Positions 369-12,300 are shown, numbered from the whole stretch's first letter. The stretch is 60,789 nucleotides of DNA, filler included, from Bipalium vagum (GCA_037834085.1; 3 parts of 3 records of this genome joined end to end with filler, not necessarily neighbours in it), one strand, 5' to 3'. Notes: a model not told the origin generated them from the sequence alone. Translations and numbers: made by a program.

Positions 369-3300
369 GACTCAAGATATTTGTACATGGTAATGGATTA
401 TTTACCCGGTGGTAATCTAGTCAACTGGATGAGTAAACTTGAGGTTCTGTCTGAAAAGGACGTCTGTTTCTATGGTGCAGAAATCGTTCTTGCGATCAAT
501 GCACTTCATCAATACGGATTTGTTCACCGAGACATCAAACCAGATAACCTATTGTTCGACGTACAAGGTCATATAAAATTGGTCGACTTCGGTTCCTGCG
601 TTAAAATGGATCCCGTTACGAAATTTGTCAACTGTAATCGGGCCATCGGTACTCCTGATTATATCAGTCCGGAAGTATTGCTTTCACAAAGTGATAATAC
701 GAAGTACGGTCAAGAGGTTGATTGGTGGGCGCTGGGAGTGATGTTGTACGAAATATTCTACGGTGAGCCTCCGTTTTATTCCGACAATCTTATCAACACT
801 TATGGAAAAATTATGACCCATGAACAAAGTCTCTCATTTCCTCCCGATGAGGACGTATCGGAAATTGCTGTTGATTTTATGAAGAGTGAGTTTTCGGCTT
901 TCGGTTAAAAAATCTATGGAAAAGAATTCTCATATTTTCCTCGAAAAAAAATTAATGTTATCTTTTTTATCGTCAGATTTAATTTGTGATCGGTCGATTC
1001 GTCTCGGTCAAACCAGTGATGCTGAGGACATAAAATCCCATTACTTCTTTCGACCCGGTAATCACAAATGGAATTGGGACAATATCCAACACTTTACTCC
1101 TCCTTTCGTTCCGAAACTGGAGAACGATTTGGACACGTCCTATTTCGATTTCGATGAAGACGATATCGACAAGAACTTCTCTTCTCAAGAAAACAAGGAC
1201 GTCATAAAACCCACCAGCTTCATTGGAGAGAATCTCCAGTTTTCCGGTATTGATTTTTTTTTGGTTTTTTAAAATTTTTAGCTATGGATAATGAATTTTC
1301 ACTGATTTTAATATTTGGTTCTTTTATACTCCCCACAGGATTTACTTACTCCAAAGACGCAAAAGCCTTTGTCAGTGCTAATGAAAAGAACGTATCGAAA
1401 ATCGATAATAATATTTCGCCAAAAACGCCGGCAGTGTTAGAAGAAAAACTGAAACGCGTTTCCAAAGAAAATCAGGAAAACAAAGATATGGTCGATCGAT
1501 TGGTGATTGAGAAAAAGGACTTGGGTGAGTGTTTTGCATTTATGATTTAGTAAAATAGATCTGGACATAACAAAAAATGACTAATGTAAGATATGATTGA
1601 ACTTTTCGGTGTCTTTACACCGTGACCAGGCTGTGTCCTGTCGGAAGTCTGTGCGTCAACCTAACCTTTATACCCTAATTGTATTGATTGTTTATTAAAT
1701 GGAGCTTTTGTGAAGTTTTTTGTCAGTGGTAGAGACAAACAATTTTAAGTTTCTGAAAATAATCGATTTAAATTGTGCACCACAGACAATGTCAACGGTA
1801 AAACTGGAAAAAATCTCTGTTCTATAATATATTGATTTTTGTTATAGAATATTATTGATTTTTTAAATTTTCAATTAACTTCGGCTTTCAGTTTAATCTG
1901 TGTTGAGATATTATTGATTTATTTAATTTTTGCTAATCAATTATGTAATATATTTATCATTGATTTCAGATCATTACCACCGAAATTTGTGATTTTCGAC
2001 GAATTTTTCTTTTGGGTTTTTTTCACATGTTTTATGGTGTTATTTCTTCAACGAGTTTTCTATTTGATTTGTCGGTCTTGTTGGTCTTTTGTGTTTCATT
2101 AAATGTGTGAATTTAGATAAAATTAAGAAATAAATAATCCTAGGGATAAATATTTTTAAAATTTGGAAATATATAAAATTATTGATAAAATTTTCCAGTG
2201 ATTTATCAATACTTTTATAGTTTATTCAAAAAAGTATGTTCAATAAAAAAAATTTTTAGCTATTTATTTTATTTAATTTTTCTAGCTGGATGAGGTTTTA
2301 AACTGTAATATTATTATTAATTATTATTATTTAATTAATTTTAAATATATATTTATTAGAATATAATTTTTATTTTGTTATTGATTTTCAATAATTAATA
2401 AATTTTTAATAATTAAATATTTTTCAAATTTTTTTTGATTTTGTGATATAAATCAAGAAATACAGCTGCTGGCAATTAATAATAATTTCAAAAAGGAAGA
2501 GAATATTTCTAAAAAGTTACAGAACGATTACAGTGACTTGAAGACATCCCATGCCAGCAGTCAGCAAAAAATTCAAAAGCTTGAAGAGATCAATCAAAAT
2601 ATTTCTTCAGACATTTTGAAGTTAAAAGTAATTTTCTACTGTGATTTTGTAAATATTTCTTCTTACTTTTATTTTTCAATCTCGTAAAATTGATTATAAT
2701 AAATATTAAAGCGAATAATATTAATAATAAATGGTTTTTCAAGACTTTTTTAATTATATTTTTCACTTTCGTAAAATTGATAATAATAAGCCCTAAAATG
2801 AATAATAATAATAATAATAAATGATTTTTCAAGAGTTGCTATCGTTTTTCATTTTCATTTTATTGAGAAATCTCTTTATCAAGTCACAAAAGAATCCTAT
2901 TTATTATTTATTTTTATTTTATATTTTTAACAATATTTTTAATAAATCAAAGTGTTTAACATAATGATTTCCTGTTCTAAATGTTTTCTCCAGGCTTCGG
3001 CTGAAAAAGAAAAGGAACGCCTGTTGGCTGACATCGAGAAACTCGATAGTCATTTGAAAAGATCCAACGTAAAACTTATTGAAGTTCAAACGGAATTCCA
3101 TCAAAACAAGTTGCGCTCTGTGAAATTGGAAAAAGAGCTGGCTAAATTGCAGGAAGCCTATGATTTGTTGGAAACTAATATCGCTCTGGCACGGAAGCAG
3201 GATGGAACTTTGAATGTGAAATCGGTAACAATTTTAAATTTTTGGATTTTTATTTCTTTTTCTTTTTCATTGATTTTTTTTTGGTTGCCAGAAAGAAATA

Positions 3301-9300: not shown

Positions 9301-12300
9301 TATTAATAATTTCAATTTTTGGAACGTGACAAAAATTTGTTTACACAAAATGCACTTTTGTAAAAAAAAAACACATTCCACGAAAGAAATTAATTAAATA
9401 AAAAATTAAACATCATTTTTATTCCAGTAAACTATTTTGTTCTCTTAATAATTTCATTATGAATCTGGTGAGATTTGTGGAAAAAAGTATTGAATTTTTC
9501 TATCTTCAAATTCATATAGTAAACTATTTTTACAATTAGCTTAAACGAAATGTACCATGTTCTTCATCAACAATAACTTTAATGGCCGAAATCGAATAAT
9601 TAGTAGAAGCCTAAATTTAATTGTCCAGCGATCGATATAAACAATATTTTGTTTATTTTTAGTCTACTAGGAGACCAATAATATTAAATTGTTGATAGTA
9701 ATAAATAATTTAATTAAGATAATCTTTCAGATAAATTAGAAGCTGTTTCAATTTAAATCGCATACATATTAGGGTTTTCAAATTGAAAATTCGTTTTTTA
9801 ATAATATTAAATACCGTTGTTTTAATATTGTTTATATCGTCCATAATAATAAGCAAAACTTTTAAATTCAATTAAAAATCAAAGATTGGTGTCAAGTATA
9901 GCAATAATTAAAAAATTCAAAAATGACACTCGTATTCGGCTTTGTGTGCTGTATGAGTTTAAATGGGGATCAAATACCATCATTGCCACCAAAAATATCA
10001 ACCATGTTTACGGTGAAATAATTGATGTTCGAAAATACCAAAAATTGTTCGACCAGTTTCGTAATGACGATCTCAGTTTAAAGAAAAAGCACGAGTGCAT
10101 CGACAATCTCTGGTGGATAATGATTTGATAAAGGCTATCATCGAAAAAAATCCTAGATAAACATTAAAAGAATTGTTTGTTCTTTTAAACTGTATTGTCG
10201 TCAGTGTATAGAATCACATAAAAGAGATGGGCAAAATCAATCTGTGTGGTGTTAGGGTTCCTCATGATTTAACTCCAGAACAGAAGACAAGTCCAGATCT
10301 GTCATTTATTTTTTCATTCGGCATTTAAAGGAACCATTCTTCAATGGATTGTGACTGGAGATGAAAATTAGATAATGTACAAGAATACATATAACAAAAA
10401 TCAGTACTTATCCCCAGTCCAAATCCTGTACCAGTGACGAAAGCAGGATTTCATCCAAAGAAAGTCTTATTAAGTGTCTTCTGGAAATGCAAGGGATTAA
10501 TTCACTTTGAATTATTGAAAATGAATCAAACAATAAATTCCAATGTATTTCTTGACCGTTTGAGAGATGCAATAATTGTGAAACGTCCTGCATTGATCAA
10601 CAGAAACAAAATAGTTTTTCATCATGACAGGGCTGCCACACTGCAAAAATGAGACAGCAAAAGCTGAAAGTCTTTCAATGGTAAATAATGCTTCAATCTT
10701 CATATAGCTCAGACATCACACTTCGGTTCGAATCCCGGTATCTCCGATTAATTTTCACTAACATGGCGACCACACCAGGACACCAATTAGCGGAAGAGGT
10801 CTCAGAAATAAAAATGTAAAGGAATTGAATGGAAATAGAAGTTAAGAGACTCGAGGCAGTTAAGTGTATGGATGTGAGGTTTAAAGGAGGGGATGTGAGA
10901 TATCTTGAAAATTAGTCTGGAGATGTAGCTCAGCGGTCAGAGCAGTCCATTCGCATGTGAAGGTCTTCTCCGATCATCCCAGTATCTCCGATTATTTTCA
11001 ACTAACAAAAAGTTTCACAGAATTCGTAATATCGAAACTTCTTTGAGTCTGTTCTTTAATGACAAACCCGGTTCGTAGTATGTCAATGACATCAAAAGTT
11101 TGGTCAAACGTTGGAAATATAAAATGGAAAATACAGTACCTGGGCACTGAAATAGACTCAAGTATTATTTTGCAAACAATGGTATTTCACTGAAATAAAA
11201 ATACTACGGAAACACACTTTGGTCAAAAGTTAATAAAAATTAGCTTTTTCAAATCGGTTTAATTTCTTATGTCAGGCTTGCTTCCTGGATGAAAGTTCAA
11301 TCGTGCTTAACAATGACCTTATTAATTTGTTCGTCGCCCATTTTATCTGCGAAAGGGATAAGAATGAATTACGGCCTCAATTAAGAATTTGATTTCTTGC
11401 TCGTGAACGATTTCAGTTCATGCATGATGGAGAATCTTGCCACAGAACTGAGGTAATTCAAAAATATATCAATGCAGAAAAAATACCACTTTTGGACCGC
11501 CCGGTAAAATTCTCCTGACATAAATCCGATAGAGAATGTTTGGAAGGCTTTGAAAGATCAGCTCACTATAGAAAATGTGATTACGAAATATGAAATTATC
11601 GAGAAAATAAAGTATTTGTGGCATAACAACAAGAATGTTCAGTGGACAGCCATAAATTCTGTCAAAGCGTGCAATCAAGAGGAGTGCAACTACTTCTTAA
11701 AAATGAGGAATGTTGCCAAATATTATATATTTTCTTTTGTACAATAGATATGTATAACATTTTTTTAGTGTTTTCAGTTTAATAAATCATTATTCTTGTA
11801 TTAAATAATGAATTACGTTAAAAAACCAAATTAAATTGAATTTACGAATAAAATCGATATTTTTTGTTTGAGTCTATTTCAATGGCCAGGTACTATATAA
11901 TATGATTGACTTCATTTTGTTATTTTATAAATAAATTTTCTAAAAAAAAATGAACTTTGAATTTGAAAACCCTAATATAACCTATGATATAATATAAAAT
12001 TTTAATTAAATCAATAATTAAAGTAAATTAATTTATTTTGATGGAAAAAATTTAAATTTCTCTGATTTGATAATTAAATTTGTTGAAAATTCCGTTATAT
12101 TTATCTCGATATATTGAAATATTTATTAGTTTTGATTACTTGTAGAATTATTTTATTATCATATTATTATTAATTTTTTATTTTTAATCTTCATTGTTAC
12201 CTCTCTTCAATATATTTATTATTATTAATTATTACTAATATTAAAATGTATTTCTTTCTGTTCACTGTATTAATTTTAATTTTTCATTTTTAATTATCTT

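Follow-up and report, generated by a model that had tools for sequence, protein, structure and literature searches.

A probable Helenus-type miniature LTR retrotransposon with tRNA-Ala-like terminal repeats in the planarian Bipalium vagum, and a LINE found within repeats of its family

The stretch of DNA analysed here, called the window throughout, comprises 60,789 nucleotides from Bipalium vagum (GCA_037834085.1; 3 parts of 3 records of the genome joined end to end with filler) and carries at about 10725-11007 a short non-coding repeat lodged within a mariner pseudogene. We read this repeat as very probably a decayed, 5'-truncated and non-autonomous terminal-repeat retrotransposon in miniature (TRIM) with tRNA-Ala-derived sequence in its long terminal repeats (LTRs), i.e. 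an element of the Helenus type, or 'TRIMp3' in Kojima's terms. All of its parts lie on the + strand. The remnant of the 5' LTR (10725-10763) consists of the last ~38 nt, LTR positions ~76-115, to which it aligns at 95%, and retains the T-loop, the 3' T-stem, the 3' acceptor strand and the terminal ...CACTAACA, with a TTTT run at 10752-10755. An 18-nt primer-binding site (PBS), TGGCGACCACACCAGGAC (10764-10781), follows; 17 of its 18 nt are complementary to the 3' end (+CCA) of the host tRNA-Arg(ACG). The PBS opens an internal region of 130 nt (10764-10893), non-coding, purine-rich and without TTTT on the sense strand, which closes with the polypurine tract (PPT) AAAGGAGGGGA (10883-10893) adjoining the 3' LTR. 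The latter (10894-11007; 114 bp, TG...CA) includes a tRNA-Ala-like sequence at 10919-10990, in which box A is intact (10926-10936) and the box B/T-arm region is destroyed; the TTTT run just past it (10995-10998) is a candidate RNA polymerase III (Pol III) terminator and end of R. The AAAAG at 11008-11012, where mariner homology restarts, is presumed from the intact copies described below to be the 3' copy of a 5-bp target site duplication (TSD) whose 5' twin has been deleted.

The original prediction, made from the sequence of this locus, had placed an LTR end, PBS, PPT and downstream LTR in the order given above, and our reading of the sequence bore out each part, with the LTR end CACTAACA running to 10763. 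It had also held that the upstream LTR repeats the tail of the downstream one, and a direct-repeat search of the window paired 10732-10763 with 10976-11007 at 88%. Its start at 10721 was slightly too far upstream, since mariner copies align through 10726 and the remnant begins at ~10725-10727. The tRNA-Ala-like cloverleaf was correctly positioned at 10919-10990, but as a structure it has decayed: no tRNA was found in the window by ARAGORN, there was no tRNA hit in the window in Rfam at E<=1, and a motif scan of the 3' LTR recovered box A and not box B. We called this copy old because its 3' LTR shares 84% identity with a young LTR and its PPT lacks one G of the family norm; it is an old, decayed, 5'-truncated relic of a ~360-bp non-coding LTR retrotransposon.

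Copies were sought across the genome (440.8 Mb in 272,664 contigs), and the copy numbers given here are first-look candidates, which are loose and not true counts. With 10700-11030 as the query we obtained 2633 candidates, and the 40 scored hits lay at 85-93% identity, many of them having a further complete LTR upstream. With only the internal 130 nt as the query there were ~520 candidates (89-93% identity), and with only a young LTR ~2270. The order LTR, PBS, internal region, PPT, LTR was found in all 53 distinct copies that were read, and there was no open reading frame (ORF) or other coding capacity in the unit. The recurrence of one architecture, with its PBS and PPT conserved, among 53 separate copies goes far beyond chance. 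The family unit consists of an LTR of 114-115 bp that starts TGTGAG and ends CTAACA, the PBS, a spacer of ~110 nt, the PPT and a second LTR. Fourteen full spans measured 335-362 bp, mostly 344-362, with 335 bp where an LTR has a deletion, and intact copies with LTRs of 114-115 bp and an internal region of 130 nt measured 359-362 bp. The PBS TGGCGACCAC[A/G]CCAGGAC was kept in 43 copies, exactly at the inner LTR border, and the PPT AAAGGAGGGGGA in 47, directly before the LTR start TGTGAGATA.

The integration sites point the same way. Perfect 5-bp TSDs flanked 11 of the 14 full-length copies and one more matched at 4 of 5 positions, while a control shifted by 5 nt produced no match at 4/5 or better in the same 14 copies. 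Each of ten lone LTRs sampled among the hits of high identity proved to be a solo LTR between 5-bp duplications, which were perfect in 7 cases and matched at 4/5 in 3. Such fixed 5-bp TSDs are the pattern of an integrase and exclude the insertion of a short interspersed element (SINE) by the machinery of a long interspersed element (LINE). Of the features that the original prediction had proposed to look for in the genome, intact LTR-PBS-PPT-LTR elements, solo LTRs and TSDs within its 4-5 bp were found, and the forms it had named as refuting (A-tailed SINEs and long tandem tRNA arrays) were not seen among the copies read. Identity between the two LTRs of one element ranged from 99.1% (L025) down to ~81%, and from this the family's activity spans a long time, perhaps up to the recent past. 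Two further features of the LTRs were observed. A 13-nt deletion at LTR ~72-85, between two T-stem CCCGG repeats, recurs in several copies (L012, L024, L028 and others) and is probably due to slippage, and there are two sub-variants, with ATATAT or ATAAAT near the start and CACTAACA or CAACTAACA at the end.

The tRNA likeness that has been lost from the window copy is evident in younger members of the family. Ten young LTRs scored 37-50 bits against RF00005 over the full model length (gathering score 29), and ARAGORN labelled them 'tRNA-???', their anticodon loop being shorter than usual. Judged by these models, young LTRs are tRNA-shaped yet are not decoding tRNAs. By eye, the LTR can be read as forming a 7-bp acceptor stem with a G3:U70 pair. 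Of 60 LTRs, 49 have box A (TRGCNNANNGG) starting at LTR position 33 and 36 have box B (GGTTCGANNCC) starting at position 76. A single T4 run starting at position 103, just past the tRNA-like part, was present in 39 of the 60 full LTRs, and in none of the 60 did a T4 run start before position 79. The sense strand of the internal region is poor in T (17%, against 36% in the flanks) and consists of 69% A+G, with TTTT in 5 of 53 copies and AAAA in 51 of 53. This T-poor composition is compatible with Pol III read-through, but the scarcity of TTTT is also expected from composition.

No tRNA gene in the genome matched the complement of the PBS exactly outside mutated TRIM copies. When mismatches were allowed, tRNA-Arg(ACG) genes were matched (L072; called by ARAGORN, RF00005 58.8 bits), whose 3' end, once CCA is added, complements the PBS in 17 of 18 nt, and in 18 of 18 for the minority of copies with G for A; the A/G variation in the PBS is a CpG-to-CpA change. 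Two other arrangements of tRNA-Arg sequence were seen. At four loci (L068, L069, L073 and L070; contigs C155911, C180585, C264346 and C188775) the 3' half of tRNA-Arg(ACG), from the anticodon loop onwards, lies downstream of a shared A/T-rich repeat end, and by their sequence these look like the published planarian LINE insertions that are specific to genes of tRNA-Arg (LIN15_SM). At L071 ~1499-1540(-) (C255542) and at L076 (C60943), other LTR ends (...AACTAACA and ...ATTAACA) are followed by ~40 nt complementary to tRNA-Arg. This is longer than a usual 18-nt PBS and reaches the T-arm and the anticodon arm, with neither ORFs nor an LTR pair nearby. From the sequence it looks as if plus-strand synthesis had continued into the primer tRNA.

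Taken as a retrotransposon, the element would be copied as follows. The 5' LTR would give rise to the RNA, perhaps through Pol III acting from box A at position 33 and box B at position 76, with U3 formed by the 25-nt leader, R extending from the start of the tRNA-like part to the T4 at position 103, and U5 by the last 8-9 nt; transcription would need to read through the first T4. The host tRNA-Arg(ACG) would prime the minus strand at the PBS and the PPT would prime the plus strand, and reverse transcriptase (RT) and integrase would be supplied in trans by an autonomous LTR element. Integrase genes are abundant in the genome (2155 first-look candidates, some in open frames >1000 aa) and a BEL/Pao protease is present. 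Copia RT is nearly absent (9 fragments), and this, together with the 5-bp TSD, makes a Gypsy or BEL/Pao partner the more likely. Three leads to a partner were followed and rejected. At L079 the differing internal region after LTR and PBS proved to be single-copy DNA, and L063 and L071/L078 have LTR ends ...AACTAACA and a tRNA-Arg PBS but neither ORFs nor an LTR pair. The last ~75 nt of the L079 contig (L079:3657-3733, C203062) are another very abundant repeat, with at least 40 matches at 96-99%, many of them at contig ends.

Several points weigh against this account of the element. No autonomous partner was found in this genome, all three leads being dead ends, and the size of the family is known from loose candidate numbers. 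Both the use of Pol III and the borders of U3, R and U5 are ones that we infer, and a T4 placed straight behind the tRNA-like part would end most Pol III transcripts before they left the 5' LTR. The assignment to tRNA-Ala draws on the G3:U70 pair and on a 5' end that we take to be typical of animal tRNA-Ala.

The LTRs of the family are also occupied by a second element. The part of the 5' LTR upstream of ~77 was replaced by other sequence in ~10 of the 53 copies, and this sequence encodes two parts of a non-LTR retrotransposon ORF, its C-terminal zinc finger and a region resembling a restriction endonuclease, and also includes a 3' untranslated region (UTR). Homologs of the ORF fragment carry RVT_1 and zf-RVT, and some carry Peptidase_C48 (an Ulp1-type protease); this domain pattern suggests that the nested element is a LINE of the NeSL/R5/LIN type. 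Copies in TRIM LTRs were located at L007:1746-2610(-), L065:545-1500, L079:2795-3363 and L022:1240-2259(-), and also in L002, L008, L017, L026, L030, L045 and L061. The 3' junction of the LINE is invariant, with ...TTTTGT[T/A]CG joined to TTCGAATCC within box B (identical at >=9 loci). The upstream part of the LTR is kept at 2 of the 3 readable 5' junctions: L065 reads LTR(3-53), LINE (RT to 3' UTR), LTR(77-112), PBS, internal region, PPT and LTR, and L079 reads LTR(1-72), LINE, LTR(77-115) and PBS. The LINE was therefore inserted into the LTR and not fused to it. A query spanning the junction found at least 20 LINE-TRIM composites and at least 10 LINE 3' ends followed by only an LTR tail, which are insertions in solo or 3' LTRs. 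We had also considered the LINE fragment as a discrete 865-bp unit or a 'long LTR', and rejected this reading: its boundary at query position 391 is the truncation of the query copy (L007), and a pattern joining the LTR to the start of the supposed unit had zero matches in the genome.

Planarian LIN families with specificity for 28S, tRNA-Arg or tRNA-Glu genes have been reported (Kojima and Jurka 2015, PMC4640811), and by analogy a LIN relative that targets a tRNA-Ala-like LTR fits the known targets. We put forward, tentatively and as a possibility to which we would give well under even weight, that the tRNA-like LTR is used twice, as the TRIM's own Pol III promoter and as a dedicated target at which a NeSL/R5/LIN-type LINE lands and cuts box B. 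More than 2000 LTRs would then offer a dispersed 'safe harbour' to a LINE that targets tRNA genes, cleavage by the LINE would inactivate and truncate TRIMs (with the window copy as a scar), and read-through could carry TRIM parts to new LTRs. If true, this would be a three-layer parasitism, of LINE on TRIM on LTR retrotransposon. The LINE in box B offers a tractable case of one mobile element targeting the small-RNA module of another.

The site of the window copy is a Mos1-like mariner pseudogene on the + strand, of which the left part spans 9889-10726 (HTH_48 at 9889-10125, Transposase_1 at 10437-10649) and the right part 11008-11117. Other genomic mariner copies align up to 10726 and then again from ~11006-11008, and in the 5 mariner contigs with both flanks the equivalents of 10726 and 11006 are ~26-41 nt apart (38-41 in 4 of 5). 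From these copies it follows that LTR positions 1-~75, the 5' TSD and ~40 bp of mariner are missing at the site of the window copy; the TRIM/mariner joint is marked by a 2-nt GG overlap. In our reading the TRIM inserted into the mariner pseudogene and later lost these three parts. The surroundings hold further features that we record here. The mariner pseudogene lies downstream of a protein-kinase exon (354-908, +) of the DMPK family (MRCK/ROCK-like, 'Genghis Khan'-like), with further exons possible to ~8868; the exon is 91% identical to a protein from a public run and ~53% to flatworm, acanthocephalan and rotifer proteins, which are its best named matches. Sequence at 11117-11170 is the start of another short high-copy repeat, with >20 genomic matches at 88-97% to this part of the query alone. 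A second Mos1-like mariner pseudogene fragment (HTH_48, Transposase_1 type) was observed at 17364-17666.

Taken alone, the window shows just a 32-nt direct repeat and zero tRNA calls, so that its likeness to a retrotransposon might be put down to chance or to local tandem duplication of a tRNA pseudogene; hundreds of dispersed copies with the same ordered parts and TSDs leave this explanation with practically no credence. Another objection is that the 115-bp unit could be a tRNA-derived SINE mobilised by a LINE, the LTR-internal-LTR forms being accidental SINE dimers. The unit does resemble a tRNA, having both promoter boxes and a T4, lone units are commoner than units joined to the internal region, and its final ~38 nt are found attached to a LINE 3' end. 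However, tRNA-derived SINEs lack LTRs, start at tRNA +1 and have a LINE-type tail and variable TSDs, whereas the lone units always carry a 25-nt leader upstream of the tRNA start, begin with TG and end with CA, have fixed 5-bp TSDs and bear no A-tail or microsatellite tail. In every copy the 18-nt PBS and the PPT directly adjoin the inner ends of the two LTRs, and LTR-int-LTR-int-LTR tandem arrays were absent from the 53 copies. The shared ~38 nt are themselves accounted for, since L065 and L079 keep the 5' part of the LTR upstream of the LINE; these nucleotides are therefore target DNA and not a LINE tail. We regard the SINE explanation as very improbable.

How the window copy came to be truncated is a separate matter. 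In one explanation this and similar 5'-truncated copies would not be simple decay but scars or products of the site-specific LINE, through cleavage in the T-arm, abortive insertion and upstream loss, or else the LINE would have co-mobilised the downstream part of the TRIM. The junction of the window copy (10725-10727, LTR 76-78) coincides to within ~2 nt with the fixed point at which the LINE 3' end meets the LTR. Some ~40 bp of the adjoining mariner have been lost, and the join shows 2 nt of microhomology. A LINE occupies that 5' LTR site in about 10 of the 53 copies, and further breakpoints occur at LTR 68-77 (L032, L035, L041, L064). Against this, a random deletion would end there by chance in ~4% of cases (+-2 nt window), truncations also occur at LTR positions 33, 40, 43 and 59, and the T-stem CCCGG direct repeats favour slippage deletions at the same spot. 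The window copy retains zero LINE sequence, and although more copies were truncated at the 5' end than at the 3' end (about 8-9 vs 3), the difference is not significant. An involvement of the LINE in this truncation is possible and, in our judgement, doubtful. A LINE origin for all 5'-truncated copies was rejected: the first sample was biased by its query, and in an unbiased sample truncations occurred at either end.

Among known systems, the window copy and its family compare most closely with Helenus, the TRIMs with tRNA-derived sequence in their LTRs (Kojima 2024, Biology 13:119, PMC10886601). Published Helenus elements have LTRs of 104-323 bp and a total length of 311-1263 bp, and most of their tRNA-like parts are not usable tRNAs (PMC10886601). 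The planarian element falls within this size range, its tRNA-like part is likewise unusable as a tRNA, and solo LTRs with TSDs were found in both; tRNA-Arg primers are also found in wasp Helenus (PMC10886601). The Helenus-type reading contained in the original prediction was supported at the level of the family, which has the whole set of Helenus/TRIMp3 features: two short TG...CA LTRs in which box A (TRGCY...YGG) is joined by box B (GGTTC), a PBS complementary to a tRNA of the host, a PPT, a fixed TSD and no ORF. There are also differences. The host is a triclad of the phylum Platyhelminthes, outside the six published animal host phyla. Its placement among the triclads agrees with an intronless mortalin ORF of the genome, which shares 88% identity with mortalin from Dugesia japonica, against 83% or less for every other named match and 93% for one entry bearing no organism. 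The TSD has 5 bp here, whereas it has 4 bp in every published animal family, linked to Gypsy, and 5 bp in fungal and plant families, linked to Copia (PMC10886601). Published animal examples were aligned with tRNA-Lys or tRNA-Val (Fig. 2 of that paper), and tRNA-Ala types came from rust fungi, whereas the planarian LTR is tRNA-Ala-like.

All structural features of Helenus are thus present, but the host phylum, TSD length, tRNA type and primer differ, and the planarian family therefore appears to be a new family of the already described Helenus type and not a new type of element. The earlier suggestion that the family is undescribed in this lineage is plausible: none of five PBS/LTR motifs of the planarian family occurs in the published Helenus sequence set (0/5), and the phylum is not listed there.

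Three other systems share part of this design. Cassandra, a plant TRIM that is also cited in PMC10886601, resembles the planarian family in having a Pol III-type small-RNA gene in the LTR with a terminator inside the LTR; it differs in its 5S rRNA module, plant hosts, length of 565-860 bp and Pol III transcripts shown experimentally. The ta-TRIM of taeniid cestodes (Koziol et al. 2015, PMC4558846) likewise belongs to flatworms and shows TG...CA LTRs, a PBS that matches a tRNA, a PPT and numerous solo LTRs, but its LTR of ~198 bp has no tRNA-like sequence, its internal part is ~590 bp, its PBS matches tRNA-Leu and it has a candidate partner, 'lennie' (PMC4558846). The tRNA-derived SINEs (SINE2) are also short and abundant, and their head resembles a tRNA with boxes A and B; unlike the planarian family they have no LTRs, PBS, PPT or TG...CA ends, their TSDs vary, their tails are of LINE type and they are mobilised by LINE RT. 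Set beside these systems, the planarian family extends the range of TRIMs with a tRNA in the LTR to flatworms. About 2000 tRNA-like LTRs, scored as tRNA by Rfam, would inflate the tRNA and SINE annotation of planarian genomes. The 5-bp TSD marks an animal family that probably uses another integrase lineage than the published animal families, and this difference supports repeated, independent origins of the tRNA-in-LTR design.

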